Shown one piece after another: positions 15,727 through 59,632 of a stretch of 64,000 bases of DNA. The translations under genes and the position numbers were made by a program. Location of the stretch: positions 55,688,464-55,752,463 of the forward strand of contig NC_043011.1 of the NCBI RefSeq assembly GCF_006345805.1. Reading direction: 5' to 3'. Below the pieces are notes generated by a model, which did not search any database, was not told the DNA's origin, and was given only the letters and a program-made list of their open reading frames with translations. Position 1 is the first letter of the stretch. Every line of letters starts with the position of its first letter. The stretch is from Octopus sinensis (taxonomy: Eukaryota).

Positions 15727-15790
<64 letters not shown>

Positions 15791-18700
15791 TTTACGAAAA
15801 ATACAAAAGACGAAGACAGGTGGTGTACAAAACAAACAGATGTATTAGTATAATGCTCAGGAATAGAAAAAGTCTTTTACGTTTCGAGCCTACGCTCTTC
15901 TACAGAAAGGAACACAGAAGAAACAGGGAGAGAAAAAAATGTGTGTAGTGGTTAATGATCTATCATGGCGATCTATATTGAACAACGCCACCACATCTAT
16001 TATGATTGAAACTATTTCATTAAAATGAAATAGAGAATAGTCAAACCTTAGGCCTACATTTCATTTATATTAGGGGCTGACCAATGTCTTCTGAGTGCAG
16101 AAACCCATTGAAGGGATCATTCTCGTTTTTAATGTCTTCTGGTTTAACACCTCTAGTTAAACCTTGGTACTCGTTATCAGGACAACTTCCTTCTTTCTGC
16201 CCTTTAAGGGCTCATATGCAATGATCCCCCTTTCCCTTTATTTGAGGCAGTGAAAAGAAGCCAATATTTTTAAAATTGATTCCTTGAACTAAATGTTATA
16301 CCTGAGTAAGTTATACAAATGACATAAAAATAATTTGATCACCTTTTTGATTCCTGTTGGATCAGTTTCATTTATATTTTTCCGAAATTCTTGGTTGATC
16401 TTCTGTTTTGAAGCTATGAGTGACAAAATAATGAAAAAGGAAGGGAAAAATAATGCAGCTGATTTTATATTCTTACCACAATTATCAAGAATCTATTTTA
16501 AATAGGTTTACCCATCAAAAATACACATTTCCTACCGTTGCAGTAATAACAAACTATTAAAAAAATCTGGAGCCAGATATCTGCGTATGTCTTTGAAGAT
16601 TGGTGTAACTGAGAGAATATATAAGAGGGCTTTTAGAGGAGCTCAGGTCCGTATAAAGCATATGCAGTAATGTACAAATATCTGGGAAGTGAACAATGCA
16701 TGAGTCAGGTACATGCTTTTGTGTGTATGGAGGGGAGAAAATCAGGTGTAGTGTTGGCAAATCTCAGGAAGCATGGAAGTTTTGAAGGATGCAGTGCTCC
16801 GACAACTAACAACTGATGCCGGCAGTTTGTTCCATGCTTCAGCAACTCTTAGTGTGAAAAAATGTTTCTGAAAATCATGGGAGCTGTGCTGTTTTCTGAC
16901 TTTGTAAACATGTCCATGGGTGTTAGACAGGCGGAGTTTGAAAAGGTGCTCAGAGTTATTGTTAGTAAGATGGTTAATAATTTTATGGGTGTCTGCCAAG
17001 TCAGCTGCCAGACGTCGGAGTTTCAATGTATCCATGCCCAGGGAAGTAAGGCGTTCAGAATATGGCAAATGCCTGATGGAGGGTATTCTCTTGGTTTACT
17101 TTACTTAATAGATATAATAATGCCTTGCTCTGTGTTATTTCTAGAATTTCTACTTAAAAAAGAGTAGGATTCTAATTATTTCAATGAAAACAAATTTCTT
17201 GAGTTAATAATGAAATTCTCTTCAACCATACCTTCCAGTGCTGTTAAGTCATTTTCAAAAACTTTTCTCCTTGTTCTGTGGAGTTGCTTAAAGGCAGCAA
17301 TAACCTGGAAAATGTTCAAACATTTTTAAGTGATTTTATATTTTTCTGCTTCACTAGAAATGATTTTTTTTATTGTTTCTTTTTATTTTGTTAGTATTCT
17401 AGTTTGTATTTTATTTCGTCTTTATTCCCATTAAAGTCTAAATATTATTATTATTCTGTTTAACCCCTGGTCAACACTAATCAAAGCTAACATTTATCTT
17501 TGACTTATTTATCTTTTACTTGTTTCAATCATTAGACTGTGGCCATACTGGGACACTGCCTTGTAGAACTTTTAGTTGTACTGGTATTTTTATATATTAT
17601 ATATGTAAAGCTTATGTTATACATGCATGTATATTGTTATAATTGTTTTTTTAAAATAAATAAATAAATATATTAAATAAAATCAAAAACTGAACACAAA
17701 GGATATCGCGGTACACGTGTTTCAAGCTTTATAAACGACCTGTTCTTACATCAGTGTATAATAGATGTAAAAGATGGTTTAAAGCTCTCTTCAGCCGCAA
17801 ACATTGTTATTCCAAAGAGTTATCCTTTGTGTTCTGTTTTTGATTTTATTTGATATATTCCCTCTCACCTCTGCCACTATCTGGCATATACAGGTGCTTA
17901 CACTTATCAAGTATTCACCCTAATTTTGCAGTAACTAAATAAATAGACATAATATAATGTCTAAAAGCTAACATATAATTAAAGACATTCCAACCAAGCC
18001 TATCCATTCCGGCTTCTAGGGATATGTTAGACTACACCATCCAATGTGTCGTTTACCTTTGTCGAAGATGGAAGATTTGGTTGCTATTTCTAGCAGGTTG
18101 AGACTCCATATTTCCTAAGTTTGTATTCAAAGACAGATGAAGTTCTAAAATTCTTAGCAATCCTGAAATGAATCTTAGTATTATCCCAGATAGGGCAACA
18201 CTGCCTGATGTGGTCCCATCGATCTGTGGTTCTATGTCAGGGAGGTTCCTCTTATCAGTTGGCTAGAAACAGCAGCTAACGGTCGGGGGCAACAGTTTAC
18301 ACTCTTTCCTTATAATTTAGAAACCTGTGAACCTATCTCAACGATTAATGTTATAATTACAATTGCGTTGCTCGTGTTTCATTGAATGTGGTGATTTTTT
18401 TTCATTTGTTAGACGTTTAATTGAATTTCATTTGAAATGACAATTAACCATTATATTCCTTACACCGATATATTTCTGCAATTAATCCAGTTTCAGGTCT
18501 TTTCATATATTTTAAATTTAACCCACAATGTAGAGATCATCCCGCAGTACATACCTATTTCTTTTAATACCCACATAGAGACGACAAACAAGGACAGACA
18601 AACGGATTAAGTCGATTATATCAACCCCAGTGCGTAACTGGTACTTATTTAATCGACCCCAAAGGGATGAAAGGCAAAGTCGACCGCAGCGGAATTTGAA

Positions 18701-19443
18701 CTCAGAACATAACGGCAGACGAAATACCGCTAAGCATTTCGCCCGGCGTGCTAACGATTCTGCCAGCTCGCCGCCTTGTATCCCGCAGTACAGATATGAA
18801 GCAATCACAATTCGAAAATGCCATATTTCCTGAACATGGGCAGAGAATTAAGGATTTCGACAATGGCATTTGAAGAATCGTTATTATAATATAACTTGCT
18901 GTTATTTCCATTAAATCTATTAACAAAATGTCAAGTTTATGTATAATTAATTCAAAAGTTCAATAATACAGAATGTTAATTCAATGACTTGACACCTCGA
19001 TGTAATTAACGAAACAATGCCAGGTAGCAACATAAGGTCTTACGGCTATTAATGTGATGGTGAGATGTTCATGTCAGCGGCTCCAAGTTTGGCTTTACAG
19101 GTGTGTCATTAAGAGTCGCCTTCAAACGGTTCCAGGCGATTTTAAAAAGGAATTCGTTAATTAATAACTCATATGACATTATTATTTCAGATCGGATAAT
19201 TTTCCAGTAAATATAATTAATAATAATAAAAAAATAAACAGAAATAAATTCATTAGATGAATGAAGGTCAAATTAAAAACCATGCGACTGATTGCCTGAT
19301 ATTATAGCAGAGTTGCTTCAATACCAAACACGAACGTTTATCTGCAATATAGAACAACAACAATTATACTTTTTTCGGCAATAATTAGTTGCGGAAGGAG
19401 ACATAATTAAACCTAAAACACTTCTTACCTGCTTTCTGAACAT
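11951..19443 (-). CDS. LYRM7: LYR motif-containing protein 7 / complex III assembly factor (MZM1L), 114 aa; join(19429-19443,17232-17304,16343-16413,14727-14808,11951-12054)
   Basis: Manual splicing with GT-AG sites and matching phases gives MFRKQVIAAFKQLHRTRRKVFENDLTALEASKQKINQEFRKNINETDPTGIKKLLKIAEDSEMILRTQIIQAEETTPGVYKAKITDDTFKDTNYPFKPDAKIPEFKRGKKKSSS*. This resembles human LYRM7 as recalled (VLQLFKTLHRTRQQVFKND..KINEEFKNNK..ELMKIGSDVELLLRTSVIQ). Internal exons are 73/71/82 nt. Confidence 0.93.
12775..13248 (+). mobile_element. SINE family A
   Basis: Same core and (GAT)n tail; interrupts an RTE fragment. Confidence 0.85.
14195..14416. mobile_element. piggyBac-like MITE
   Basis: TTAA|CCCTTTAG ... 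CTAAAGGG|TTAA. Confidence 0.85.
14727..14808 (-). CDS. LYRM7: LYRM7 coding exon 4 (LLKIAEDSEMILRTQIIQAEETTPGVY)
   Basis: tttttttcag|TTA...TACA|gtaaac; 82 nt, phase 0->1. Confidence 0.93.
15680..15790. repeat. (AT)n(AG)n array containing a 31-bp scrap of SINE-A tail
   Basis: TCATCATCATCATTTAACGTCCGCTTTCCAT at ~15698-15728 between (AT)n runs. Confidence 0.9.
15790..15975 (-). mobile_element. Probable Penelope-like terminal-repeat fragment
   Basis: Minus-strand CTGTAGAA-GAGC-GTAG-GCTC-GAAAC (degenerate hammerhead core) next to a (TA)n(GA)n array. Confidence 0.45.
16343..16413 (-). CDS. LYRM7: LYRM7 coding exon 3 (ASKQKINQEFRKNINETDPTGIKK)
   Basis: ctcatag|CT...AAG|gtgatc; 71 nt, phase 1->0. 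Confidence 0.93.
16641..17095 (-). mobile_element. CR1-group LINE 3' fragment (LYRM7 intron 2)
   Basis: Nearly identical to 5716-6135. Confidence 0.9.
17232..17304 (-). CDS. LYRM7: LYRM7 coding exon 2 (VIAAFKQLHRTRRKVFENDLTALE)
   Basis: ttttccag|GTT...GAAG|gtatgg; 73 nt, phase 0->1; LYR-like motif reads AFK. Confidence 0.93.
17667..17859. repeat. 39-bp inverted repeat enclosing the hammerhead
   Basis: Arms 17667-17705 and 17821-17859, 2 mismatches. Confidence 0.9.
17706..17800 (-). ncRNA. Minimal type I hammerhead ribozyme (Penelope-type) in LYRM7 intron 1
   Basis: Minus strand reads TTGCGG-CTGAAGA-GAGCTTTA...TAAAGCTT-GAAA-C-ACGT-GTA^-CCGCGA: 6-bp stem I, intact core, 8-bp stem II, palindromic stem III ACACGTGT, GUA site. 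Confidence 0.8.
18557..18775 (-). mobile_element. SINE family C with 13-bp target-site duplication
   Basis: ATCCCGCAGTACA at 18539-18551 and 18780-18792. Confidence 0.88.
19429..19443 (-). CDS. LYRM7: LYRM7 coding exon 1 (MFRKQ)
   Basis: ATG TTC AGA AAG CAG|GTAAGA; strong donor, phase 0. Confidence 0.85.
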
Positions 19444-19969
19444 GTTTACATTTCATTACAAGTCTCGCATCTCATTTGTGAAGTCACGCGAAAACTCGTC
19501 GGTTCGCTGTAACTATGGCAACTGTTAAGCAACAAAGATGGTTCCCGCAACGAACAGTTTCCTGTCACTGCCGAAAAATAGATGTTTGTTACGTTAACTA
19601 TCTTGGAGGAACTGGGAATTGTTTGTTCAAGGAAAAGACGATAAGGAGAAAACCGTTTCAGATATTCTAATAGCGATAAAATTTATTAATTATTATTATG
19701 TGAGAAAAATAATTATAACTATATTAATTTTATAATATATTGTATTTATTATAACTTTACAAAAGTAAGCGTTAAGAGTATGGAGAAAGAAAAAGGAAAG
19801 AAAAGCATGAATATTCCATTCAATAGTGCATCATTCCAGGGAAGACTAGTGTTCCTTTCTAAAAGTATCTGAGACCGCCCCACCCAAGATACGGCATTAG
19901 CGCGGGAATTTCCAGATATTTTAATTTTTCATATCTCTTTCATTGGTTCACAATTTCACAGCTCAAACG
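19444..19969. promoter_or_regulatory. Bidirectional promoter and 5'UTR region shared by LYRM7 (-) and TMEM232 (+)
   Basis: Divergent ATGs at 19443 and 19970; locally CpG-richer; probable TMEM232 5'UTR exon ending at donor AAAA|gtaagc (19764) and splicing to 19962. Confidence 0.75.
19509..19522 (+). promoter_or_regulatory. RFX X-box GTAACTATGGCAAC
   Basis: Matches GTHNYY-AT-RRNAAC; further GCAAC half-sites at 19530-19534 and 19547-19551. Confidence 0.7.
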
Positions 19970-20106
19970 ATGCCTATTTTCTACCTTCCGATTGTCAATA
20001 AATTTGGGATACTTTCCGAACAACAGCGACGTAATATAAACAAACGACTTCACACGAAGCAACCTTCAAATGCCAGCGATACGAGGCCTTCCTTTTCTTC
20101 AAATAG
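19970..20106 (+). CDS. TMEM232: TMEM232 coding exon 1 (MPIFYLPIVNKFGILSEQQRRNINKRLHTK...SSNR)
   Basis: Acceptor tttcacag at 19961, ATG at 19970, donor AG|gtgaac, phase 2. Confidence 0.8.
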
Positions 20107-23100
20107 GTGAACACAAAAGTTTATTTATCTTTTACTTGTTCCAATAATTAGACTGCGGTCATACTGGGACACCGCCTTGTAGAACGTTTAGTCGTACGAA
20201 TCGGCCTCTGTGTTTTTTTTCTTCTTTTAAGCCTGGTACCATCAGTCGATATTTTGCCGATTCGCTACAAACGGGAACGTAAAACACCAACACCGGTTGT
20301 GGGGCAAACATTGACACAATGACACACACACACATAGATACATGTATTTCAGAATTTGGAATACGATAACAGGTAAGAGAAAAAAATTAGTTGAGTGTTG
20401 TCGTGAAAACACGAGAAGAGTTGAGGGGTGAGACGTTAAAAAAAACTTTTTTGAAAGAGACTTCCCACCATTATTTTGAAATGTACGACATTCACACAAC
20501 ATCCATAAATTTTTATCACATGGGAACAGACCTGCATTTTTAAGCTGTTGTATTTTTTCTTTTTATCAAAAAAAATCTCTCTTCACTTCTACGATTTTAT
20601 TTAAACGAAAAGCTTCCTTTTATTCATGTTACATGAAGATTTAATTGAACTTTTTAATAAGAAAATCAAAAAAAGTTCTAATTACTTTTCCTTAAATCTA
20701 CCAAATTAAATAAAACCTCAAATTTTTTATTTGTTACAGAAGCCCATTGCAAGTTACTGAGGAATTTGTTGAAAATTACAACAAAGTTAAGAATTTAGAA
20801 GAACAGAAGAAATATCATGCAAGGGCAGTTCAAATGCTTCTTAGAATCAAAGTAAGAATTATGTCTGGTATTTTCGCATCTGAAGTTCTTTGAACTGATG
20901 ACAAACAAGAGACAAGATTTACTGGTTTTGTTATTAGAAGTGATTAATATAAACTCTGCTTCCAAATGCTGTTGTTCCTTTCACCGTATTCTTGTCTTTT
21001 ATTATAATTTTATTTACTTGTCAGGAATACTTTATTGAGTTATTAATAGGAGAGCCTGCACCAGCCTGTTAATGTAGTTTATTGAGCCAGGAAGGACGAA
21101 ATGCAAAGTTGATTTCAGAAGAGTATGAACTTGTTAGACTTGCAAATAACTCTGCCAAATCCACTTCTCTTGGTACAAATGACCGCAAATAACAAACCAT
21201 CTTGCTGGGCAATAATATTGAAATGCAAGGAAAAGAAACGGCTTTAAAGCGTTCTTCAGTGGCAGTTTTTATGAATTACCAATCTATATCTAACTTTGCT
21301 AATTTTATGTGTGTAAATATTAACACAATGTCAAAAACTCAATACATGAGTAAGAACAAATATTTAATACATAGAGTTCCAGTTTCAGCTGTGTATATAT
21401 ATGTATGTATTTATATTTATAACTTAACCTTATGAACTTTCTAAACTCTCTGACGAAGCCCAGAGACAGACCCAAGTACCTAAATCTTATCTACCAAATA
21501 CTTCAGTTCCCTGAAGGGATATAAGTAGATTGGGGCACTTTGGCCTCTTGGCTGAAACAGCTGTAAGATATAATCTTATCTTTTGTGATCTACATTATAT
21601 ATTTTAATAATTACTGGTATTTTTATATATTGTATATGTAAAGCATATTATGCTATACATGTATGTATATTGTTATAATGGTTTAAAAAATAAAATAAAT
21701 AGACATAATATAATGTTTAAAAGTTGATGAATACCACCTCTTCATCCCCTCCATTTTCTTATTGCTGTATAAATTAAGGGTAAAACAACTTTTTACCCTT
21801 ACCCATTTATTACACTCGGTAATGTAGTTGCCATGCAATGAAAAAACACTTGTGTATTAATAATTGGGTTTTCTACCAGCAGTATATTGGATAGATATTA
21901 TCCCTTAGTTGGTTGGATCCACAACACATCTAACTCTCTTGGAATATATTTCTTTATATTATATAGAGGGCACTATTATACATAGAAATAAATATATACA
22001 AAGGAAAAATTGATGTTTTTTTTCTCTTATGAGGTTTTTCATGCTAACTACTTAATAAATTCTTATGAAGATTTTATCCTATTTTTAAATTATCTCTTGG
22101 AATATATATATATATTTGTATATTTGTATATACTGCATTTACTCATGTATAATGCAAGAATTGAATCCAAAACATCATTGCCAAAATTGGAAAGTGGCAT
22201 TAAACTCAAGTATGATGTATTCAATGTGTTTAAGTATAAAAAAAGAAAAGAAAAAGTATGACTGATTTTTTTTTTAGGTACAGAAAGTGCAGAAGACATA
22301 TTTGAGATCAGATAAAAGAGTTGTTGGCCCTGCAATAAATCATCATCATCATCATCATCATCATTTAACGTCCGCTTTCCATGCTAGCATGGGTTGGACG
22401 GTTCAACTGGGGTCTGGGGAGCCCGAAGGCTGCACCAGGCCAGTCAGATCTGGCAGTGTTTCTACAGCTGGATGCCCTTCCTAACGCCAACCACTCCGAG
22501 AGTGTAGTGGGTGATTTTATGTGCCACCGACACAGGTGCCAGACGAGGCTGGCGAACGGCCACGCTCGGATGGTGTTTTTATGTGCCACCGACACAGGTG
22601 CCAGACGAGGCTGGCGAACGGCCACGCTCGGATGGTGTTTTTATGTGCCACCGACACAGGTGCCAGACAAGGCTAGCAGACGACCACGCTCGGATGGTGT
22701 TTTTTTTATGTGCCACCAACACAGGTGCCAGACGAGGCTGGCGAACGGCCACGCTCGGATGGTGTTTTTATGTGCCACCGACACAGGTGCCAGACAAGGC
22801 TAGCAGACGACCACGTTCGGATGGTGTTTTTTATGTGCCACCGACACAGGAGCCAGATTAGGCTGGCGATCGGCCACGATTGGATGGTGATTGTTACGTG
22901 CCCACAGCATGGAGGCCAGTCTGTGCGGTACTGGCTACGGCCACGTTCGGATGGTTTTCTTGTGTGCCACCGGCACTGGTACCACAAAGATACAAATTCC
23001 ATTGATGTTCATCTATTTTGATTTTGTTTGATTTTCACTTGCCTCAACAGGTCTTCACAAGTATCACAAGAAGGAAGGTATGCACAGGTGGACTGACTAC

Positions 23101-24787: not shown

Positions 24788-27700
24788 TACATACATACAT
24801 ACACACTCTCTTTCTTCTCACCCTCCTTAATTCCTCGTTCCTCTTTTTCTCTCTCTTCTCTCCCTCCTTAATTCCTTTGCTCCTCTTTTTCTCTCTCTCT
24901 TCTCTTCTCACGTGACCGCTGGCCGACTAGTAGCCCTTTTGCGTCGGATCACGGGCACGGTAACATCGTTGTTTTCGTCTGCTGTAAGGCTTAATTCTCA
25001 CTCAATACGCCAGCTGAATTCAGTTTATCCCCAGTCAAAAGACGCCTGTTGTTATGTCCTGTTATTATTATTATTATTGTTTTTTTGTATTTATATTCGT
25101 ATTAAAAAATTTTTTTTTTTGCATTATATTCGTGTAACATCGTCCTTTTTTCGTACACATTCGATTCTTTTTCCGAGGATTCTAATGCTCTTAGCTTAGT
25201 TTTTCCTTGGGGCTGGCCAGATTGGAGCAATTTCAAGATTAATCAGCTGAAATTGCGAGGATGATCTGGTTCTTGACTGAAGATTAAAAGCTTCGAATGA
25301 CCCGTCTGTGTTTTTCGTATCGTCTATTTGGATGTTTTGCGTTCTTGTCCCAATTGTATTTTTTATATACACACACACACATATATATACATATATACGA
25401 TGGGCTTCTTTCAATTTCCGTCTACCAAATCCACTCACAAGGCTTTGGTTGGCCTGAGGCTATAGTAGAAGACACTTGCCCAAGGAGCCACGCAGTGGGA
25501 CTGAACCCGGAACCATGTGGTTGTTAAGCAAGCTACTTACCACACAGCCACTCCTACTGCAACACATATTATACCCTCTTTCGGCAGCTTCTCCTGCCCA
25601 ATTTGTGGAAGATCCACATTTCAAAGACATCTGTTGTCTTTTCCACTCCTGTGTACATTGTCCAAGTTTCTGCCCCAAAGAGGACATTTGGCATAATATA
25701 ACAGTTTACAGGCCTCAGTTTTAGATGCACTTCAAACTGTCCTCTTTATCATTGTCAATATTCTGTTAATACCAAACTAATGTAATCATCCATTCTACTG
25801 ACTGAGCTGTCATCTCTCTAGACTTTTGCTTTGGCAGAATAAGCAGAACAATGAACCAAATATCTTGCAGTCTTTAGTAATATCTCTCTTTACATTCTGT
25901 GTTTGACTCCCCACCAAAGTCAACTTAGTTTTTTCATCCTTCCGAGGTCAGTAAAATGAAATTTTCCCTCAAGTTCTGGGATTCAAACTCTGTGCTGTTG
26001 TCTGTTGTCCAAGACTTGATTTTATTCAATTGCTGAAGCGTTTCTGGTTTTCAGAGTGTCTGGGTCTTCTGCTGATGTCACTGAAACTGGTTCCCGTTGA
26101 CTGCAACCTTGTACCATTGCTGCTGTTGCTGGCAGACACCCTGTTGTCCCTGTTGAGTGCACACTTCACCCAGCAGTCGTTCCTCAGAGAAACTCACATG
26201 AAACAACTGAAGGCAAGTACAGCATTGATTGTGATGGTGATGACTAACAATACTAACATTGATTGTTTCTAACAGAGGCACAGGGGCAGGGATTTTGGTG
26301 AAGGTAGGCTTCATTGATTAAACTGACCCTGCAAGGATGAAATGCAAAGTTGAAATTGGCATTGTCAACATCATTGCTCCTGTCAGCACCATCATCATCA
26401 GCATTATCACTGTCATCTTGCTATAATTTCTGAGACATGTTCTAATAAATAAGAATAAAGTGTCTTCTCCAAGGACACACTACTCTTAACCAGCCTTTAA
26501 TTGCACAACCAAACCACCTACCATTTAGCTAGTAAGGGAGCCTCTATGTGGTTGTTTAATTTGCTAGAAATAGTAGCCAAATCTCCAAACAGTGTTGCCT
26601 ATTAAGACTTCCACTTTCTTTCTTAGAAGGACTCCGTGTTCACCTCTGTTCTGACTGAATTTCTGAGATGTTGAAGTTTGTATTTTCTATCCATGTGAGG
26701 GGCCCAAGCAGTTACACATGTTATCTCGCTGTCTATCACTGTCTCTCCTCCTCCTCCTCTTTTGTCTCTCTGTCTCTTTCTCTAGAGTAGATGTCTCCTC
26801 TGTCAACACCTGTTGATCAAATTGTCATCATCATCATCAGGTAAGGGATTTGCAAATTCGGTTCAGTGTCGGCGAAAATACCTTGTGGTGTTTAAGTTCT
26901 GGCTCTTTATATTCTGTGTTCAAATCCTGCCAAGGTTAGCTTTGATCCTCATATCTCCCCAGGGTTCATAAAGTACTAGTCAAGAACTGGGGGTGATTTT
27001 ATGGCCATCTGCCTCTTGGATTTGCAGGCCTTGTGCCTTTTTAGAAATAATTGCCATCATCATTACCATCACCATTGTCATCATCGTTGTCATCACTGTC
27101 ATTGTTGTTCTCATATTAACTGAAATAAAATTGGTGAAATTAATTCTTTATTTTGTTAGAAACTCATTTGAAGGTTGAATCCCTGTTGAAATATGTTTTT
27201 TTTTCTTTCTAGGTTTGTCAACTTGTCTTCATGCGCTTGTATTATCACAAAATGGCCAACCACCTTGATGGATGGCAAGAAGTGAAGAAAAGATTACATT
27301 CTTACTTTGCCAGTGAGTATAGGTTTTAATTGTTTAATTGCTGAGACATCTGGACACATTGAAACTCCAACGTCTAGCAGCTGACTTGGCAGACACCCAT
27401 AAAATTATTAACCATCTTACAAACAATAACTCTGAGCACATTTTCAAACTCCACCTGTCTAACACCCGTGGACATGTTTACAAAGTCAGAAAACAGCACA
27501 GCTCCCATGACTTTCGGAAACATTTTTTCACACTAAGAGTTGCTGAAGCATGGAACAAACTGCCGGCATCAGTTGTTAGTTGTTGGAGCACTGCATCCTT
27601 CAAAACTTCCATGCTTCCTGAGATTCACGAACACTACACCTAATTTTCTCCACTCCATACACACACAAGCATGTATCTGACTCATACACTGTTCGCTTTC

Positions 27701-30700
27701 CAGACATTTGTACATTACTGCATATGCACTTTTTGACAAATTGTGGTGCACCTGAGCACTGTATACAATAATTTCATTATTATGTTACTGTATTGCTGAC
27801 AGTAAATCACAGAAATCATCATCATCATGATTGTTCTTATGTCTACTTTTCTATGCTTGCATCAGTCTGACAAGAGTAGATTAGAACAGAATTTGCCACA
27901 GCTGGATGCCTTTCCTGTTATCACCCCCACCCCCTCATTAGAAGAAGACAAGGCCAGAGTAAATCACTTGAATAAATTAAATTTGAGTTAATTAGTGTCG
28001 ATTAATGATGCTGATGTTGTTTGGCACATCTCAAAATATTGTGATTTAATCACTTTTGATTTGAATATTTTGAACTTCATCATCATCATTTAACGTCCGC
28101 TTTCCATGCTAGCATGGGTTGGACAATTTGACTGAGGTCTGGCGAACCAGACTCCAGTCTGATCTGGCAGAGTTTCTACAGCTGGATGCCCTTCCTAACA
28201 TCAACCACTCCGAGAGTGTAGTGAGTGCTTTTACACGCCACCGGCACGAGGTCCAGTTTGGTGGTACTGGCAACAGCCACGCCCAAATGGTGCTTTTTAC
28301 GTGCCACCTGCACAGGAGCCAGTCCAGCGGCACTGGCAATGACCTCGCTCGAATGTTTCACGTGCCACCAGCACAAGTGCTAGTAAGGCGACGCGGTAAC
28401 GATCACGCCCGAATGGTGTGCTTAAACGTGACACTGGCACGAAGGCCAGCTTGTTGCTCTGGCAACGATCTCACTCGTGTCCATGAATACAATTATCTTC
28501 ATGTCTATGTGTTTTGAACCAACCGAGATGAGACAACTTGTTTCCCTGGGGATAACTGAACAGACTGGATTGTTTTTACAGCCTTTCATTTGTTTAGATA
28601 TACTTTTTATATTATTTCTCATAGATAAACCTGGAGGGACGGGAGTTGCAGGGAACTGTACCAGGTAGCCAAAAAGGAGGCTGGGCGGCAGGTATACATA
28701 GTCAACATGCCAGCGCCGCCTTGACTGGCTTCCGTGCCGGTGGCATGTAAAAAGCACCAACTGATCATGGCCGTTGCCAGCCTACCCTGGCACCTGTGCT
28801 GGTGGCACGTAAAAAGCATCCACTACACTCATGGAGTGGTTGGCGTTAGGAAGGGCATCCAGCTGTAGAAACACTGCCAGATCAAGATTGGAGCCTGGTG
28901 CAGCCTCCTGGCTTCCCAGACCCCGGTTGAACCGTCCAACCCATGCTAGCATGGAAAACAGACGTTAAACGATGATGATGATGATGATGATATCTGTGAA
29001 TGGCAGTGCTTTCAAATAGCTACAACCCTCTGGTTGAAATTAGTAAAAATCTAGAAAAGTTTATTTTTGTTTCGTAAATAAACCTCTTTGACTACATATT
29101 TTTGTATGGCTTCCCCCCCACCTTTAAAAATTTAAAAAGTAATCATCTTTTATAGAACTGGTTAGTTTTAGAATTTTCCATGCTGGCATTGGTCATTTGA
29201 CCAGATCAAATAAGCTACAAAGTTGCATTGTGACTTGGTTGGATGCTGCCCTTCTTAACACCAACTTGTTTACAGTGTGAACTGAGTATTTTGTTTTCAT
29301 GTGACTGGTATATAAAATCCTAACCTTGCAGAATTCCATTTTCTTTCTGTCTTTCAAATTCCACTGCTTGGACCCATGCTCTATGACTGAGGCTCTCTCT
29401 CTCTCAAAAAAAAAGGATTCTTTTCATAAAATACGATTGAAAACAGTTTTACATCTAACTAGAATAAAAACCTCATATTTGTTAATGTGTGAATCATAGA
29501 GAAATGAGCCTCTGTCTGTTTGTTCCTTCTCAAGCTATGCCTGGCTCATAAGGGCCGGCTTCCCGGTTTCCTTGGCGTATAGGTTCCCCACCTGGACAGG
29601 ACGCCGGTCCGTCACAGGTGAGCTGCAAGATGCAGGAGGAAAGAGTGAGAGAAAGTTGTGGCGAAAGAATCAGCAGAAGTTTGCCATTACCTTCTGCCGG
29701 AGCTGCGTGAAGCTTAGGTGTTTCGCTCATAAACACACACATCGTCCGGTCTGAGATTCGAGCCCGTGATCCCACGACCACAAGTCTGCTGCTCTAACCA
29801 CTAGGCCATTTGCCTCCACGTCTGTCTGTGTCTCTGTCTGTCTGTCTCTCTCCCTCCCCTCTTTACTTTTGGAATTTTCCAAACAGATCTTTTCCTTTTC
29901 AGGCTTCTCTGATTTCGCCTCCTTCTACACCAAGCATCCAGATGCCCACTTGTTGTTCAGATTTATTATACAAGTTGCTGACATCATCTTGGTTGATGAT
30001 GATCTTGAAAATGACACAAATTATGAGTTCTTTTCTCATAATTTCAAAACAGATTTACTCCCACCAGCTCTGGTAAATATCTTCTTTTGTGCTTTTTATT
30101 TAGTAATTTGCTTTGATGAAGATATTGATTGCCCTTTCAATAAAATTAACAGGAATAATAACTTAATAATCTTGTTGCTTCGACACCTGTTTGTATACTA
30201 ATGTCTTTGTCTAATCACAACTGTAAATGTTACAGATCTATTCTCAGAAATAAATACCTATGGCAAGTCGTAAATTATTTTAGTTTTAGTTTAGCTGAAT
30301 TCCTTTCATTCCTGATGACGTATCAGGAAATGAGATCTCTTCATCCAACATAGTTGCCAGCCTTGTTACAAGCCTGATCCCCAGACACAATCCATATCGG
30401 TCAGTTCCTTCTCCACAATCCTCAACCAGCTCTTGAGCAATTTGCTTCACTTCCTTTGTGTCTTGCCCACCTCTTGCTTTCACTTGAAAGACTCTTTCTC
30501 CACTCATTTTGTAGACACGTGTAGAATGGGGCTGAGTAGCTTCTGTCGTTTGACACTGAGGATATTCTGTAGAATCCCCAGCCCAGCTGGAGCCATGACT
30601 TCTCCCGTCATGATGTGGTCATTTCAATACATATTTAGTATGTTTCTAAGGCAATGTCTGTGAAAGACATCTACATTTTTATAGACTCTGCTGGTCTTTT

Positions 30701-32181
30701 GCCGTGTCTTGCAGGCATAAGTTACCATTAATGTAATAATCATTGTTCAGGTGATGAGCATGCCAAGCAAAGTGCTTTACAACATTTTGTCTGTCTTTAT
30801 GTTCTGAGTTCAAATTCCGCCAAGGTCAACTTTGCCTTTCAGCCTTTTGGGGTTGACAAAATAAGTACCAGTCATGCACTGGGGTTGATGTAATTGACTT
30901 ATCCCCTCCCCTGAAATTGCTGGCCTTGTGCCAAAATTTGAAATCCATGTGACAATCAATGTATAGAGATGGGATTTTGTGTCTTGTTTGCTGAAGGAAT
31001 CAGACAATAGAGGCTTAATTAATTTGAATTTAGAATATGAATGCCATTTATGTGTTGCAGGCTTTGCTCTTGAAATAACTGTTAAATCTTCCTTAATTCA
31101 AACAGGAACTGCTAAATTAGACTGAATACCATCTCCCCCCCTCACTACCATTCTTTGTATTCTTGGCATAATCCATTTACAGTATTTCGTTTTTGGATTT
31201 GGTTTGCAAGATTCTTTATATGAGTTCCTGTGTTGAAGCATATTCTGTTGTGTCTGGGGAGAGTCATTTTCTTTTTGTGCCTTATTATTTAACACACTCA
31301 CTGGTAAAATTTCCACTTTTTTTTCTTTTTTTATTGTCCTAAAACTATTGAAGAGGTTGCAGTACATAACGAAATTTTAGGACAATAAAAATAAGAAAAA
31401 AGTGGAAAATTTACCGGTGAGTGTGTTACATAATAAGGCACAAAAAGAAAATGACTTCCCAGACACAACAAACCATTTACAGTAGTCAACCAGTTATGAA
31501 GCAGTGGTTATCTCCCTTGAATAACTGTCTGCTAGAAGTTGTCACATGTTAGAAACATGTTGCCCATGGAATCAGGTGGCTTCTTGAAGACAGTCTGATG
31601 ATGGTTGAAGAAATAACTGATTGAAATATTGTCATAATGCTTAAAAACCAACTTAGGAACATATGTCCAAATATGTTCCTTGAACATAAAAACCTATTTA
31701 AAGGATTTATTAGAATGGTTGGCTGCTGTTTTAGCAGGGAAAAGGGTGGGGAGTGGTTTGCTATTACTGTTGTTGTTGTTGGTGGTGGTGGTGGTGGTGA
31801 ACAGCGGTGGTAACAATTGTGCCTTGAATTTGTCTATTTCAGCTGAGTAAGGTCGAAAGCGATTCACCTCCCCCTGAAATCTCTTGTCCCTCCCGTCACA
31901 GTTCATGGGTGAGTAAGAGCATGCATGAACTTAGTGCTCCTTTATGGCATGCCTTAAATGTTTGGAAATACCAAACATTGTGTTCCGGGGATGGAATGAT
32001 CAGAGATACAATGAACAAGAAGGAACTGTATTTTGTTGACTCTCTTTCCTCGTTGATACAATGCACTTTTAATCTGGACACAGCTTCTTGGTAAGTCTGG
32101 CCTTAATCATTTCTATAAAGACGTCTGATCTGTTACATGCTGAACTTCAAGTAGATATAAGCCTTTACAACATGTATTTCA

Positions 32182-44200: not shown

Positions 44201-47200
44201 TCAGATGATGATTCTAAACAAGCTGTTATATAAGCGATGCTATTCTTTCCCAGTCTTCCATGTGAAACAGGTGATGGTTGGTGACAGGAAGAGCATCTAA
44301 CTATAGGAAACCTGCCTCAACAAGTTCTGTCTGGTCTATGGAAGCATAAAAAATTAGACATGAAATGATGATGCTATACGTGTGTGTGTGTGTGTAAAAA
44401 GCACCAACCGATCATGGCCATTGCCAGCCTCCCCTGGCACCTGTGCTGGTGGCACGTAAAAAGCACCCACTACACTCACAGAGTGGTTGGCGTTAGGAAG
44501 GGCATCCAGCTGTAGAAACACTGCCAGATCAGACTGGAGCCTGGTGCAGCCCCCTGGCTTCCCAGACCCCAGTCGAACCATCCAACCCATGCTAGCATGG
44601 AAAACAGACGTTAAATGATGATGATGATGATATATATATATATATAGCTTAAATGTAATGCTGACTATTTTCTGGTGGTCTAATACTTAAGAAGTTATAC
44701 AAACAGGATTGATTTGAAATAGAAATGCTAAAATAAGGAAGATGTCCATTATGGGAGTGAGGCTGGTGCATTGATCTATTCCTGTGGAAATTCTTTGCCC
44801 CAGTCACACACCTGACTCCAAGAATGGTTGATTTTTTTTTCCCTTTTTTTTTTTGAGTTGTTTGCTTTGAATTGATTTTGTCTTCATTTCTGTTGTTGAT
44901 GCTCTTTGAATATTCTTCGTGTGTTGCAGTTTTATTCTACAAGGAAGACAGCCCTGTCTTTTAGGCAGACTTCACTCCATAACTTCATGTCACACATGGC
45001 TGACAACTTGGTCGAGATTTATTTACTAGAATCATGTGGCAGCAAGGAACAGCAGAAAGAACAAGAACAACATCAGCAACGACAACAACAACAACAACAA
45101 CAAATCACAAACAGAAACAGTTTGACCCAGAAATTAAATGAGAACAAATTATCAATATTTGATCAAAGGAAATCCATTTTTCCTCCGAGGTGAAACCATA
45201 AATATTTTCATGCATTTAAAGTTTTACTTTAATGAGTTTTGTACAGCATGTTGAAATAAGCTCGTTAGAGCTGATCTCAGAGCACCATTTAATAACCATG
45301 TTGCCATGGCAATAGTTCTAAGTAAAGCAGGGAGTGTAGGAAGTAATTAGAACTTTAATGAAGCTGGTAGAACATGAAGACCTGCGATTGATCTGTTGTG
45401 GTTTAGACCCAGGTCGACCTAGAAAAAAACAGACCAGAGATCGAAAGTTATTCTGGCCATGGCAATCCTTGCCTTTCATTTCTGTCATCATGCATCTTGG
45501 ACTATATAATTTCAATGTGCTCTTTTTTAAAGATTGTTGGATGTGATTTAAGGGAGATTTGGGTGCTGTTTCTAGGAGGCTGAGCATAAAGGTTCTTCAT
45601 TGGTTCATATGACTGCTGTTAACTTGACTTATGATGTCCCCCAATGGATTATCCTCAATGGCTTATCCCCAATGGATTATCCTCATCCAGTTTTCTAGAC
45701 ATGATTTTATTCAATGTGGGATTTAGTTGATCCAACACAGATCTGACATTTACTGCAAAGAAATTTTGCCTTTTACCATTTCTGGGTCGATAAAAAGGTA
45801 CCAACGTAGAGTTGTAGACCAGCAGAATTGTAAGAAGGAATCAGATGTCTTGTGGTATTTATTCCGGTTCTTTGTGTTTTTTATCAATTGAAATCCTACC
45901 ATGACCTTCCTGGATGACAGACTTAATCTGTCTCCTGGTTTCACACCACCACTTGGCCCTGGGGTGAGGATGACTTTAGCAGAATCTGACCTGTTGCAGC
46001 TATCACAAGATTCAGTCTTTGTTGTTGTGTGATGGCTTGTATGACCCTGAGAGCTTTGCCAGGGCCTCCCATGCTGGACAGGTCAAAGAATAGAGGCCAG
46101 ACTAATATGGATCATCTCTCCCCAGAAGTAAAAATGGGTTTTTAGAAAAAAGCCGAGTTATAGATGATTAAAAGTAATGCAAAAAGAGGACCTGGGAGAG
46201 GAAGGCTTTCTCCTCAGGGATAAGTTAGATCCTGACCTGATCCACAAGGGAGGTGGAAGAGAGGATGCCCTAAAAATTGCTGGAAATGGAATACAGAAGT
46301 AGAACTGCAAAAGCAGGGAACCAACTGGAGAACAGACCAGAGTTGAGAGGAGTGGAGACAGGTGACGAATGGCCTCTGTTCCGTAGACAGGGAAGGACAT
46401 AAGTAACTCTGTTGCAAGGATTGAGGCCAAGTCTCAGGTTTCTCCCTCTCTTCCACCAGCCTTGGGGGCAAAAAAGGGGCCATGTGCCTTCTCTCTTGAT
46501 TAAAAGATGTGTGTGTGTGTATACAAGGTGCACTTCAGAAGTTTTCAGACTTATTCAGGAGAGAGAGAGTTCTGAATTTCAAAGAAGTACAAACTCTAAT
46601 CTTCAAAGTAGGATACTTTGACTTCAGTGCACTTGTTGTAGCACTCTGGCTATTTCATGAAAGTTCTCCAAAGTGAAGTGGGGGGGGTCCAGGACCCTTA
46701 TCACAGCCTCCTTCAACTTCAAAATGACTGCCTCTGAGGTTCTCCACGGGGCCATGGGGAACAGCCAAAAGTCACTAGGGGCAAGGTCTGAACTCTAGAG
46801 AGGGTAAGGAACAGTTTTGATGGCCTTACCAACCAAGTGTGGCCGCTGCCAGCCTCCCCTGGCACCTGTGCCAGTGGCACGTAAAAAGCACCCACTACAC
46901 TCACGGATTGGTTGGCGTTAGGAAGGGCATCCAGCTGTAGAAACATTGCCAGATCAGACTGGAGCCTGGTGCAGCCTCCTGGCTTCCCAGACCCCGGGCG
47001 AACTGTCCAACCCATGCTAGCACGGAAAACGGACATTAAACGATGATGATGATGAATATATATATAACTGAAATGGTATAGACAAAAGCTTTATGCTACA
47101 GTAGGAGGTGGGGTGTCCCAAAGAAAAGAGAAACTGAGGAAAACCTGGGAAAGAATGAAGTGTCAGGATGCTATGTCGAAGAGAAAAGATGACAACAAAC

Positions 47201-50723: not shown

Positions 50724-50982
50724 TCATCATCATCAGTATTGTTTAACATCCGCTTTCCATGCTAGCATGGGTTGGACGATTTTCTGAGGTCTGGCGAACC
50801 AGACTCCAATCTGATCTGGCAGAGTTGCTACAGCTGGATGCCCTTCCTAATGCCAACCACTCCAAGAGTGAAGCGGGTGCTTTTATGTGCCACCGGCACA
50901 AGGACCAGCTTGGTGGTACTGGTAACGGCCACGTCCAAATGGTGCTTTTTACGTGCCACCTGCACAGGAGCCAGTCCAGCGA
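50724..50982 (-). mobile_element. SINE family A
   Basis: Core plus tail. Confidence 0.85.
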
Positions 50983-51003
50983 AGTTATAAGAAGTCACAG
51001 CAT

Positions 51004-51201
51004 CAGTGTTTCCCAACCATTTTGGCTGAACACCCCACTAAAAACACTTGAATATTTAATGCACCCAAAATTTTTACTTTTATATGATAAATGTAAAGGC
51101 TACGATTAAACTTAATAAAAGAAATCTATTGTTCACAACTCATTTCATGGCTCTTAATGGCCTTTTTAGGGGACAGTATGGACCCCTCTTTAGAACCACT
51201 G
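51004..51201. mobile_element. hAT-like MITE, diverged
   Basis: CAGTGTTTCCCAA ... TTTAGAACCACTG; degenerate 8-bp TSD (6/8). Confidence 0.55.
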
Positions 51202-51535: not shown

Positions 51536-51864
51536 ATGGCTTCCATGCCGGTGGCACGTAAAAGAGCACCATTCAAGCGTGATCGTTACCAATGTTGCCT
51601 TACTGGCACCTGTGCCGGTGGCATGTGGAAAAAGATTCGAGCGAGGTCATTGCCAGTACTGCCTGACTGGCTCCCATGCAGGTGGCATGTAAAAAGCACC
51701 CACTACACTCTCAGAGTGGTTGGCGTTAGGAAGGGCATCCAGCTGTAGAAACTCTGCCAAATCAAGATTGGAGCCTGGTGCAGCCATCTGGTTCGCCAGC
51801 CCTCAGTCAAAATCGTCCAACCCATGCTAGCATGGAAAGCGGACGTTAAACGATGATGATGATG
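51536..51864 (+). mobile_element. SINE family A
   Basis: Core plus tail. Confidence 0.85.
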
Positions 51865-52345: not shown

Positions 52346-52684
52346 AATGTGGCCGTTGCCAGCCTACCCTGGCACCTAAAAAGCACCATCTGTACGTGGC
52401 CGATGCCAGCGCCGCCTTGACTGGCTTCCGTGCCGGTGGCATGTAAAAAGCACCAACCAATCGTAGCCGTTGCCAGCCTCCCCTGGCACCTGTGCCGGTG
52501 GTACGTAAAAAGCATCCACTACACTCACGGAGTGGTTGGTGTTAGGAAGGGCATCCAGCTGTAGAAACACTGCCAGATCAGACTGAAGCCTGATGCAGCC
52601 TCCTGGCTTCCCAGATCCTGGTTGAACCGTCCAACCCATGCTAGCATGGAAAACGGATGTTAAATGATGATGATGATGATGATT
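52346..52684 (+). mobile_element. SINE family A
   Basis: Core plus tail. Confidence 0.85.
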
Positions 52685-56704: not shown

Positions 56705-56885
56705 TTTCAAATTTTGGCACAAGGCCAGCAATTTTAGGGGAGGGTAAGTCAATTACATTGACCCCTGTACACAACTGGTACTTATTTTATTGACCTCAAA
56801 AGGTTGAAAGGAAAGTCAACCTTGGCAGCATTTGAACTCAGAATGTAAAACTGGAAGAAATACTGCTAAGTATTTTGTCCGGCAC
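56705..56885 (-). mobile_element. SINE family C, diverged
   Basis: Core motif present. Confidence 0.75.
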
Positions 56886-59352
56886 AGTAAGGGATTCTGC
56901 CTAATTTGGTCAGACAGAACCGTCATGAATTTATAAAATATCTGTGATTCCATGACGAACTAAAATGTTAAACCCAAAATAAGACGGTTTTAAAATAAAT
57001 TTTGTGTGAATGATAAAGGAATGAAGTAGCAACCAATAGTTTCATTGTTTCTTATTTTGGTTCCGTAAACAGCTGACAACTGTGTTGCCTTCCTCTATAA
57101 TACTTATTTACACCCTTGCATCTTGGACTCTTTGAGGATTGGAGAATGGCTGAAAAAAAATCACTGAATTGTAACAGAGAGCAAATTCAAGGGATGGTAA
57201 AATATTCGGTAAAATGGTCTTTTTTTTTTAGTTATTTTTAAAATTTTGGCAAATGATAACTAAAATAACAATAGAAAAAATACAGCCATGATACGAAATG
57301 GCTCTGAGTCCCAGAAGGATTTTTTCCAATAACAAACAAGTAAATATAACAATTTAAATAAATTTAAAAACAAAAAAACTATTTGTAATCCATGCTTTTC
57401 AAGAGCATTTCATCAGACTAAAGTAACGAAAAATAAAACTGCTACAATTAATTACTTTGATTCTAACAAAGTACATGGATTGTTTTAAGATAAAATTGTT
57501 GTTGAAAATATTTATGAGACAGAGGGAACTAAGCAAAAAAAAAAGAGTTATCTAAAAAGAAACCGATTAAGAAATATTTAATTTCCTTAAATAAACGAAA
57601 TGTAAATTATAAAGTACCAGGTAGAAATTAGTTATTTTGGTCCCCTTTTTTTATTTAACGTCATTCACATAAATAGTTTTACATTTGTAAATAAGGGTTA
57701 TTCAAGTCTGTGGCATCAAAATATCCCATCCTAGAAATTAGTCAACTTTATAACAATTTCCTTTACAAAAAAAAAAAAAAAAAGAAGCAAATCTCATGAT
57801 GTTTGTTATGCAAATTGTTTGTCGAAATGCTGTACAATTCCTTTGGTAGCAGCAAAGTCTGTGAAAAGCTTTAACAGACATTATATATATTTATAAATCT
57901 GCCTTCCATGTGGCAATCTGAAGAAAGCTGTTGAATAATAAAAAAACCTAAAAAACTCATTGTTTTTTCCTTCAGTTTAGAAATTAATTCGACCATATAA
58001 CTTATATCCATCAAAGCTGAATACTTAAAGACAGAAATTTATGATCAAACATTTTTCTAATGTTAAAAAAAAAAGAAAACAAGTCTATGAGTCACTTAGC
58101 TGAGAGGAATTTCTGCCATTCAAATAACTTTGTGAATCTTTTAAGTTCCTGCTACAGAATTTATTGGAATCCAGAAGAACAATTAATAATATCCATGAGA
58201 TCTGCTGAAATGGTTCAGGAGCGATGGGAAGAAACTCAGTTAAAGTTAAAAAATCAATCATAATAACAACAATAACAGTAATAATAATAATAAAACCCAT
58301 TTGTATGACAGCTTTTGTGGTATTTTGCCCTGACATTTTAATTACTAGAAAGACAAAATGTCAGAAACTAAGAATCAGTTGACTTTTGCAATAGAAAGCT
58401 CAGTTGTGTCCAAAGGGAAGTCGTCCTTGAACCAAGCTGTTGCAGGAAAGTAACAAGTGTTAAAGAAACAGCAGAAATAGTTATTATTATTATTATTATT
58501 ATTGTGGTGTGAAGGTAGGTGAAAATATCTTCTTATCAGTGATATGACTAGAAAAGCTGATTTTTTTTTTTTTTTTGGTTTTTCTTTCGACATACAAAGA
58601 GAAGCTGTTGAAAAGGTGGGAACCAGCTAAAGTTGTTGTTGTTGTTGATAATAACATTTGTTGCTACTGAGGCTGTGGTACTTCATTGAGGCCAGCTGGG
58701 TGCTGTTTGATGCAGCAGTGAAGTTGCACTAGAAATTCTGTTGTCCGTTTGGTTTAGTAGCAGCAGCTTTGGTGGGATTAAAAATGGCAGCAAGGATAGA
58801 ATGCTGCAGACTGGTGGAGACTATTCGTAATGTTTGTTGTGGGCTGTTATCAGCAGAACTAGTTGTTTGAGCTGGAATTTGCTGGAATATCAGGAAAGAA
58901 ACTGTTCTTCTGTGAGCGTTCTTGACAAACAGTTTTTGGGTTGAGTTTCATCAATCGGTCCAATCTGCAGCAAAGTCAAAATGATAAGCAGACACCTTAG
59001 TGACTATACAAATAATAATATTAATAATATAAGCAAATACATAACAAACAAAAATATAAAAGAGAGAGAGAGAGAGAGACAAGGGACTGCTATTTCTATA
59101 AACTTCATTAAGATTTATTACTTTAAGCAGAAAACTGAAAGTTTATAAACTAATAAAGATTTAATATTTGTTCACAATATGAGAAAATAAACTGAGAAAT
59201 GGTTTGATAAATGGTCTTATAAAGAAAACATACAAGAATTGATGTTAAGAAAATGAATTCAGTTTAACGAGAAAAAGAAAAGTAAACAAATTTTTGAATA
59301 AAATAGCATTATCGAACTTGTTAATACTTTTTTTAAAAAATAAAGCCAACAA

Positions 59353-59632
59353 ATATTGTTGTATTTAGGAATGGTCATTTTGCCAGTTTAGCCAATAAAA
59401 ACACAAGTACTATATATTTGGTGCTAATTTGCTTCAGTGTTATTTACTTTTTACATTAATCTTAATCTTATTTCAGCCAGAGTTCTTTCGTCACACTCCT
59501 GTGACCTCATCAGTGGTCCTTTGCTTTCTTATTTGTGTCTCTCCCTACTAACAGTCAGCTATTTTGTATATATAGTGCGTGTGTTTTTATTGGCTAAACT
59601 GGCAAAATGACCATTCCTAAATACAACAATAT
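59353..59632. repeat. 65-bp inverted repeat with a hammerhead-like core in the spacer
   Basis: Arms 59353-59417 and 59568-59632 (63/65 complementary); minus-strand CTGATGA-G-GTCACA-GGAG-TGTGAC-GAAA at 59513-59486. Confidence 0.85.

Follow-up and report, generated by a model that had tools for sequence, protein, structure and literature searches.

We analysed a 64,000-nt stretch of Octopus sinensis contig NC_043011.1 (hereafter the window), whose introns carry a set of short hammerhead ribozyme (HHR) motifs. These motifs are most probably minimal hammerheads of the kind associated with Penelope-like retroelements (PLEs), judging from their cores, helices and insertion architecture. We consider it probable that they mark old insertions, seven in number and independent of one another, of PLEs or of short non-autonomous elements that PLE enzymes mobilise, with four or more unrelated families represented, and that they survive as neutral relics. 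Minimal type I hammerheads of Penelope-like elements were reportedly the subject of work by Lunse and colleagues in 2017. A first-pass annotation of this DNA had recognised the motifs as minimal type I hammerheads of the kind known from PLEs, which matches the published description of that class (PMC4209133).

The motifs were located on both strands with a strict descriptor, whose parts were CUGANGA, helix II (>=3 bp), GAAA, a C-NNNN-G in which the loop is palindromic, U-N and helix I (>=3 bp). Exactly three sites matched (defined as A, B and C), and these are the sites at which complete cores had been annotated before, at 17706-17800 (-), 21447-21568 (+) and 32928-32986 (+). All three are complete minimal type I hammerheads with an 8-nt palindromic helix III (ACNNNNGU). 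Hammerhead A (17712-17794, -) reads CUGAAGA...GAAA-C-ACGU-G-UA, with the palindrome ACACGUGU and the triplet GUA. Its helix I has 6 bp (GCGG/CCGC) and its 8-bp helix II is prolonged into a rod of ~25 bp. Hammerhead B (21450-21565, +) combines CUGACGA, a helix II insert of ~97 nt and GAAA-C-AGCU-G-UA, with the palindrome ACAGCUGU and the triplet GUA; its helix I is weak (3 bp) and its helix II has 4 bp, or 9 bp if one mismatch is allowed. Hammerhead C (32933-32981, +; CUGAGGA...GAAA-C-AGCU-G-UG) has the same palindrome, ACAGCUGU, with a helix I of 5 bp, a helix II of 4 bp and the triplet GUG, which places G at position 17.

A relaxed descriptor, which accepts any short helix III and an optional bulge after A9, identified a further complete and compact core, r3 (59480-59513, -). 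It comprises CUGAUGA, a bulged G, a 6-bp helix II (GUCACA-GGAG-UGUGAC) with G10.1-C11.1, GAAA and AG-AA-CU. Helix III of r3 (AGAACU) is non-palindromic, and cleavage is predicted after C17 (site UC). The first-pass annotation had listed this site (as 59486-59513, -) among three remnants; the two others, at 31348-31374 (+) and ~15880-15905 (-), are indeed decayed. The first of these, r2 (31351-31376, +), is homologous to the r3 core and is decayed or truncated at a junction, with C3>U and a broken helix II. The second, r1 (15876-15910, -), is a decayed minimal hammerhead that retains a perfect GAGC-GUAG-GCUC helix II and GAAACGUA, with a damaged 5′ box. A probable seventh copy, F (15575-15670, -), is also decayed. 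It has the palindrome ACAUAUGU, the triplet GUA, a GGC/GCC helix I and an 8-bp helix II that is offset by an internal loop. The 5′ box of F reads CUGCUGAG in the O. sinensis window and CCGAUGAG in O. vulgaris, and the ancestral box is thus reconstructed as CUGAUGAG.

The four complete copies (A, B, C and r3) all have type I topology, with helix I open and helices II and III closed, and the same order of parts: helix I 5′ strand, core, helix II hairpin, GAAA, helix III, UH and helix I 3′ strand. The catalytic core C3U4G5A6N7G8A9...G12A13A14...A15.1-U16.1 with H17 is present in A, B and r3. It is incomplete in C (G17), in r2 (U3) and in r1 and F (damaged 5′ box).

Because the motif is short and degenerate and the DNA is AT-rich, some matches might be expected by chance. 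The 3′ half alone (GAAACNNNNGU) occurs nine times, close to the ~8 occurrences estimated from base composition, and two core-only matches at 4950-4991 and 5300-5411, which we discarded, have neither the helices nor the palindrome and look like chance. The full motif is another matter, as it was found in 0 of 300 dinucleotide-preserving shuffles, compared with three times in the window. For a second control we used 120 metagenome sequences preselected only for CTGANGA-N20-50-GAAACASSTGTH; helix I of at least 3 bp was present in eight, helix II of at least 4 bp in four, and both in none. The absence of the full motif from shuffles and core-matched controls alike excludes a chance origin. Moreover, the window has four palindromic loops, compared with ~0.6 expected (base-composition estimate), r2 and r3 are homologous to each other and to two more copies described below (r4 and r5), and the distance from motif to insertion end is constant. 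The likelihood that A, B, C and r3 are accidental is virtually nil, and chance is refuted for them; r1 could possibly be a chance match. A metagenome scan for the r3 hammerhead returned no matches. All hammerhead models of the Rfam 15 library also failed to recover any of the motifs, both at the gathering threshold and in permissive searches of short stretches (E<=10), as expected given that minimal variants carry long helix II inserts.

The boundaries of the insertions are the second line of evidence. Element A spans 17669-17935 (-), ~267 nt, between 10-bp target duplications (TAAATAAATA) at 17659-17668 and 17936-17945. It interrupts one copy of a repeat, R, that is intact at 21612-21723. The first-pass annotation had noted that three of the six motifs it listed sit inside long inverted repeats, and we can now give the arms for A, r2 and r3. 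Those of A (17667-17705 and 17821-17859) are 39 nt long and 95% complementary. The 3′ arm reaches the 3′ end of the insertion, and the 5′ arm (17821-17859, -) is an inverted copy of the last 39 nt of the element; the fold has a z of -6.8. Beyond the 5′ arm, within the target duplication and outside the inverted repeat, is a one-sided leader (17860-17935, -). We read this leader as the putative reverse complement of the PLE "tail," by analogy with PMC8557442 (Fig. 2) and PMC11167929.

Element r2 (31184-31473, +) has a 62-nt leader, hairpin arms of ~105 nt, which lie within a reverse-complement self-match of 232 aligned columns (84%), and a 10-bp duplication (CCATTTACAG) at 31174-31183 and 31474-31483. 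Element r3 (59353-59690, -), of the r2 family, consists of a leader, 70-nt arms (96%) and a 150-nt interior that contains the hammerhead, and folds with a z of -11.3. Its 11-bp target duplication reads TTGTTGACTTT at 59691-59701 and TTGTTGGCTTT at 59342-59352, and the two copies are identical in O. vulgaris. Along the hammerhead strand, A, r2 and r3 thus share one plan: a leader of 62-77 nt, the 5′ arm, the hammerhead with sequence upstream of it, and the 3′ arm at the exact 3′ end of the insertion. A further member of the r2/r3 family, r4 (2885-2996, +), is a solo arm-plus-tail fragment that matches the leader and 5′ arm of r2 and r3 on the minus strand, so that its plus strand is in the tail-last orientation. 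It has no hammerhead, as would be expected of a simple 5′-truncated copy. Elements B and C end without an inverted repeat. For B the end probably lies ~46 nt downstream of the hammerhead, at AT-rich DNA (about 21611), and for C it lies ~49 nt downstream, at a (CA)n run that begins at 33030. The cleavage site is 45-50 nt from the insertion end in A, B and C, and also in a further hammerhead at 18070-18140 of an unrelated O. sinensis locus (L001). In the r family the hammerhead is about 100-130 nt from the insertion end. The targets are AT-rich, (TA)n or (CA)n DNA. In combination, A, r2, r3 and r4 display the features of PLE-type insertions: 5′ truncation, an inverted truncated copy, an extension at one end, target duplications of variable length and AT-rich or microsatellite targets.

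Several additional observations concern these sites. Repeat R is AT-rich, ~112 nt long and 85% identical between its copies (17579-17668 plus 17936-17967, and 21612-21723). The second copy is 46 nt downstream of hammerhead B, and R could be a preferred target or part of the element of B. The relics r1 and F are on either side of one (CT)n(TA)n microsatellite (~15676-15790), indicating repeated insertion at a microsatellite. We had considered r1 and F as a tandem dimer and dropped this idea, given that the two sequences are unrelated and the (CT)n(TA)n run separates them. The r2 hairpin draws sub-threshold Rfam matches to plant microRNAs at 31246-31471 (MIR2630, MIR8007 and others), with E-values down to 2e-15.

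Long inverted repeats with target duplications of 10-11 bp, a length known in some superfamilies of DNA transposons, could also describe foldback transposons or miniature inverted-repeat transposable elements (MITEs) with a hammerhead in the loop, in which the repeats would be transposase-binding termini. That r3 and its paralog r5 share the complete hairpin architecture would fit this. However, in A, r2 and r3 only one arm is terminal, the other being set back from the target duplication by a leader of 62-77 nt, and r4 is one-armed, as is typical when a retroelement is truncated at its 5′ end. The MITE explanation fails on these two points. Furthermore, inverted repeats are missing from B, C and the L001 hammerhead, which nevertheless end 45-50 nt past the cleavage site, and the hammerhead is of the PLE-tied type (PMC4209133). 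We regard a DNA transposon origin as most improbable.

To evaluate whether the copies constitute one family, as the first-pass annotation had proposed, we compared their flanks. Outside the core, those of A, B and C resemble neither one another nor the r family, except for 17 nt around GCUGAAACAGCUGU that B and C share. Only r2, r3, r4 and r5 are related, the three window copies being homologous in the leader and outer arm. The proposal of a single family was therefore abandoned, and the window copies belong to at least four unrelated families. The paralog r5 (L001, 17327-17652) is 85.5% identical to r3, has the same plan and is inside a (TA)n run. Given that the junction of arm and interior is at the identical place in r3 and r5, the composite hairpin unit itself seems to have been transposed. 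In L001, r5 and the separate hammerhead at 18070-18140 (ACAUGU, GUC) constitute two unrelated elements within 17327-18140, on one strand, ~420 nt apart and both bordered by (TA)n, which suggests that one microsatellite was targeted repeatedly.

The competence of the motifs as ribozymes was evaluated in silico. The minimum-free-energy fold of the A monomer is the hammerhead, and the A homodimer is predicted to form the 8-bp intermolecular ACACGUGU helix III with a gain of about 11.7 kcal/mol. By these models, A would be the best candidate for a working ribozyme. When the full element is folded, the CUGAAGAG core box becomes paired to CUCUUUGG (17780-17815, -, immediately upstream of helix I), and this pairing may represent an inactive alternative conformer or chance. 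For B, the hammerhead fold is neither favoured nor distinctive (z = -1.25). According to the NUH rule, G17 prevents efficient cleavage, and C is for this reason not expected to cleave efficiently. In vitro, minimal PLE hammerheads show no activity as monomers and weak activity as dimers (PMC4209133). For one PLE, the ribozyme requires the protein of the element and is dispensable for insertion in vitro (PMC11167929).

These considerations bear on the model put forward in the first-pass annotation, in which one non-autonomous, retrozyme-like family would rely on read-through from host transcription, together with self-cleavage, to free its RNA for retrotransposition, and would cut host pre-mRNA. 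All copies are intronic and on the sense strand, so that host transcription makes the ribozyme strand, and the r family is short, non-coding and multi-copy. Octopus also has a young composite hammerhead element that adjoins (TA)n, at 6390-7410 of an O. vulgaris locus (L002, GCA_951406725.2). It comprises a 430-nt unit in partial tandem and a 345-nt inverted copy that is 99% complementary, with a 13-nt spacer. Its hammerheads are on both strands (6594-6659, -, and 7266-7332, +) and have a 4-bp helix III with a GCGC loop, a helix III stabler than those of the window copies. This composite is a candidate for a recently active retrozyme-like or PLE-terminal element. In the window, however, the copies are not one family, and Tandem Repeats Finder detected no hammerhead-containing array there, so the head-to-tail repeats of a retrozyme are missing. 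The closest complete pair on one strand, B and C, is 11.4 kb apart. Isolated hammerhead motifs cannot release a unit or a circle (PMC7229834), and as the window copies have no tandem or same-strand partner close by, each could cut only once, which excises neither a unit-length RNA nor a circle. In addition, the minimal monomers are nearly inactive in vitro, C has G17, and B has a 3-bp helix I and no favoured fold. The self-release system also conflicts with the age and decay of the copies: O. vulgaris shares all of them, their drift is close to that of the flanks, and C and F are broken. We consider such a system very unlikely, and infer that the lone intronic copies are probably inert.

The age of the insertions was established by comparison with O. 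vulgaris, in which the orthologous locus (chromosome OX597831.1) is collinear with window positions 10025-60434 (93-97.5% identical nucleotides). Each element recurs there at its orthologous site, and all insertions thus predate the split of O. sinensis and O. vulgaris. Four hammerheads together have about 10 substitutions in 282 nt, compared with 3-7% divergence in the surrounding introns. The core of B is intact in O. vulgaris, with five substitutions in 116 nt. The ortholog of C reads GCAGAAACGACUGUG, its three core substitutions having disrupted both the palindrome and the 11.1 pair. A deletion of 20 nt affects r2, and different core positions of F are broken in each species. The A and r3 cores are likewise intact in O. 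vulgaris. This decay is neutral, and the intactness of A, B and r3, at ~5% divergence from the one sister species compared, is uninformative either way.

We infer a PLE origin from the type of motif together with the insertion architecture, and it is on these two that the link rests. PLE insertions are characterised by heavy 5′ truncation, an inverted 5′-truncated copy, a one-sided tail, a hammerhead near the 3′ end and a microsatellite bias (PMC8557442). A PLE protein, once purified, acts on both DNA strands, cutting and extending them, and two internal start sites of reverse transcription delimit the tail (PMC11167929). Minimal palindromic hammerheads occur as thousands of mostly single copies, with some opposite-strand pairs (PMC4209133). 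As the inverted repeats match this standard insertion architecture (PMC8557442, PMC11167929), they need no special device. In detail, a PLE endonuclease would cut AT-rich or microsatellite DNA, as PLE biology suggests, and reverse transcription would begin at or near the RNA's 3′ end, possibly from both DNA ends. The outcome would be 5′-truncated copies, tailed at a single end and often accompanied by an adjoining truncated copy in inverse orientation. Each insertion would then represent only the 3′-terminal 150-340 nt of its element, the leader would be the reverse complement of the tail, and the arms would be two copies of the element's 3′ end. This would account for the appearance of A, r2 and r3, which are long hairpins with a one-sided leader and have the hammerhead close to their tip. 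With a 2-bp helix III and a palindromic loop, cleavage would be possible only as dimers, and the neutral drift of the lone intronic copies would have begun before O. vulgaris split off.

The likeness to the minimal PLE hammerheads (PMC4209133) extends to the CUGANGA/GAAA/UH core, the open and short helix I and the long helix II, and to a helix III of A15.1-U16.1 plus C-G with a palindromic tetraloop, which gives an 8-bp intermolecular helix in the dimer. In both cases most copies are single, heterogeneous and scattered in the genome. The bulge after A9 and the G10.1-C11.1 pair are shared by r3, and r5 has the bulge with G-U. In contrast, positions 10.1-11.1 are G-U or A-U in A and A-U in B and C, without a bulge, the helix II inserts in the window are 30-97 nt, compared with 6-8 bp as described, and helix III of r3 is non-palindromic. 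Also unlike the described cases, which are linked to the pseudo-long terminal repeats (pLTRs) of PLEs, no PLE open reading frame (ORF) was found nearby among the nine window ORFs scanned. The architecture agrees with that of PLE insertions (Craig et al., 2021, PMC8557442; PMC11167929) in the inverted 3′-end copy followed by a longer direct copy (A, r2 and r3), the extension at one end, the variable target duplications and the AT-rich or (TA)n targets, with r4 as a simple truncated copy with a tail. It differs in that the units here are 270-340 nt and non-coding, the leader is about twice the published tail length, and r3 and r5 have a single junction, as if the composite itself were the transposing unit.

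Some of these differences, and a few other points, count against our favoured explanation. The nine longest ORFs in the window, scanned against Pfam, include no PLE reverse transcriptase (RT) or GIY-YIG ORF, and the RT fragments that are present are of the LINE (long interspersed nuclear element) type. The leaders measure 62-77 nt, compared with published tails of 30-40 bp. A, B and C are without the bulged nucleotide and the G10.1-C11.1 pair that are reported to be typical of PLE hammerheads. The shared r3/r5 junction is a better fit to a dedicated non-autonomous element than to independent double priming. Weak purifying selection may act on A or r3, whose cores are intact in both species at ~5% divergence, and a purely neutral model does not predict that all seven copies should be on the sense strand, as described below.

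Metazoan non-LTR (long terminal repeat) retrozymes (Cervera and de la Pena, 2020, PMC7229834; Li et al., 2026, 10.64898/2026.07.22.740005) resemble the window copies in being short, non-coding and AT-rich, with type I hammerheads and a presumed derivation from PLE pLTRs. The nearest octopus likeness is the L002 composite, with its 430-nt unit in partial tandem. However, the metazoan retrozymes form head-to-tail arrays of 150-450-bp units and have more canonical hammerheads and circular RNAs, whereas the window copies are solitary. The HH9 and HH10 hammerheads of amniotes (de la Pena & Garcia-Robles, 2010; reviewed in PMC6155905) are also of type I, on the sense strand of introns and thought to descend from retroelements. 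The amniote motifs, however, are efficient ribozymes of canonical form that have been conserved from class to class; those of octopus are known from two sister species, and several are decaying. The window copies are thus neither retrozymes nor MITEs, nor members of any Rfam family at threshold. We found no specific description of these hammerheads in this clade in the literature.

To place the insertions relative to genes, we used the annotation of the orthologous O. vulgaris locus, which has LYRM7 (-), TMEM232 (+) and a PRUNE2-like gene (-). LYRM7 (Complex1_LYR, 119 aa in O. vulgaris) spans 11940-19443 (-), with exon 1 (MFRKQ) at 19429-19443, at the position of the annotated O. vulgaris start codon and followed by the donor GTAAGA. 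Exon 2 (17230-17307) starts at a splice acceptor, exon 3 is at 16331-16423 and the last exon is near 11940. TMEM232 (19970-50166, +) has 15 coding exons, based on tblastn of the O. vulgaris protein against the window and on the O. vulgaris annotation. A profile-free HMMER search with one TMEM232 exon retrieved a 729-aa protein, 97% identical, whose gene is on O. vulgaris OX597831.1. At the right-hand side, 58840-64000 (-) corresponds to the 3′ part of the PRUNE2-like gene, based on the O. vulgaris annotation, with a last coding exon of <=114 nt. This minus-strand gene, which had been put forward as putative, is real in O. vulgaris, where it encodes a protein of 1568 aa with DHH, DHHA2, BNIP2 and CRAL_TRIO domains. 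From the exon map of the three genes, A is in intron 1 of LYRM7 and r1 and F are in its intron 3 or 4; B, r2 and C are in introns 2, 6 and 7 of TMEM232, respectively, and the PRUNE2-like gene has r3 in its last intron. The earlier observation that the motifs are intronic and on the sense strand of LYRM7 (-), TMEM232 (+) and the right-hand gene (-) is thus borne out by the O. vulgaris annotation.

The weight of this strand bias depends on which copies are counted. Sense orientation holds for 4/4 descriptor-complete motifs (two-sided binomial p = 0.125), for 5/5 from unbiased scans, which adds F (p = 0.06), and for 7/7 after adding r1 and r2 from the first-pass annotation (p = 0.016, post hoc). 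The TMEM232 loci of two other species contain no convincing minimal hammerheads and did not enlarge the orientation sample. Although all window copies are on the sense strand, the L002 composite has hammerheads in both orientations within the annotated range of a protein-kinase gene, and "always sense" is therefore not a rule. The bias of the window copies is nominally suggestive, and it is post hoc.

One explanation for the bias is that the copies are exapted or orientation-selected intronic ribozymes, with sense copies persisting by acting on pre-mRNA or antisense copies being removed. The tally is consistent with this at every level of strictness, and the LINE RT fragments of LYRM7 and TMEM232 are mixed (three sense and two antisense). 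The A and r3 cores are unbroken in both species, A is predicted in silico to adopt the hammerhead fold and to dimerise well, and the conserved intronic hammerheads of amniotes provide a precedent (PMC6155905). On the other hand, the sample is tiny, the idea arose post hoc and the strict set of four motifs gives p = 0.125. Decay is unhindered in C, F and r2, hammerheads are substituted at about the rate of their flanks, and the L002 composite has both orientations within a gene range. Furthermore, Xenopus retrozyme copies are depleted from introns, according to Li et al. (10.64898/2026.07.22.740005). We judge exaptation or orientation selection to be distinctly unlikely.

A broader conjecture, which we also think unlikely, is that the intronic minimal hammerheads of octopus are truly sense-biased, through purging of antisense copies, transcription-coupled PLE-type integration or action on pre-mRNA. 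Antisense copies might, for instance, be purged because their core boxes, in reverse complement, resemble a splice acceptor (YTTTCAG / CTCATCAG). Action on host pre-mRNA, through dimers formed in trans, might be confined to a few well-formed copies, among them A (LYRM7 intron 1). A separate and likewise unlikely conjecture is that the r family is a dedicated, hairpin-shaped non-autonomous partner of PLEs, whose inverted repeat would pass on with the unit instead of arising afresh at every insertion.

When examining the gene context, we noted that LYRM7 (-) and TMEM232 (+) are head to head, with start codons at 19443 and 19970, ~530 bp apart. The stretch at 18300-20500 is the only one in the window with a CpG observed/expected ratio >=1 and holds both starts, and it looks like a bidirectional promoter. 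The divergent pair is also annotated in O. vulgaris and in the assembly of another species (GCA_021962125.1).

The window includes other repeats. A high-copy repeat resembling a SINE (short interspersed nuclear element) is at 22345-23020, 28119-28630, 35124-35600, 46719-47036 (-), 50747-51110 and 62050-62520; it has a GC-rich internal tandem array of 62/127 nt (22510-22902) and gives rise to spurious ORFs of the type ...LQSDLAEFLQLDALPNANHSESVV... Several fragments of a single CR1/jockey-like LINE (RVT_1 plus a conserved C-terminal region) are at 5782-6108 (-), 9150-10321 (-), 16742-17068 (-), 27338-27643 (+) and 33390-33789. A LINE-type RT ORF has 73-80% protein identity to "jockey-like" proteins of O. 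sinensis, O. vulgaris and O. bimaculoides. In intron 10 of TMEM232, antisense to the gene, two adjacent ORFs (273 and 100 aa) at 39199-40588 (-) look like a decayed transposase-type gene (...HFLDSHLDFFADNLGAVSDEYGKRFHQDISAMEKRYQG...), without a Pfam match. Exact look-ups of two transposon ORFs from the window returned no match.

With these insertions, cephalopods join the animals whose genomes are littered with Penelope-type minimal hammerheads; the ~105 kb of octopus DNA sampled from non-orthologous loci gives a rough density of one copy per 10-15 kb. The copies with exact boundaries are clean examples of how PLE-type integration builds hairpin relics with a ribozyme near the tip, and such hairpins are easily mistaken for MITEs or microRNA precursors. 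On present evidence the copies look like neutral relics of a kind already known from many animals. If sense orientation held genome-wide, it would be the first sign, for this class of elements, that selection or integration senses the direction of host transcription.

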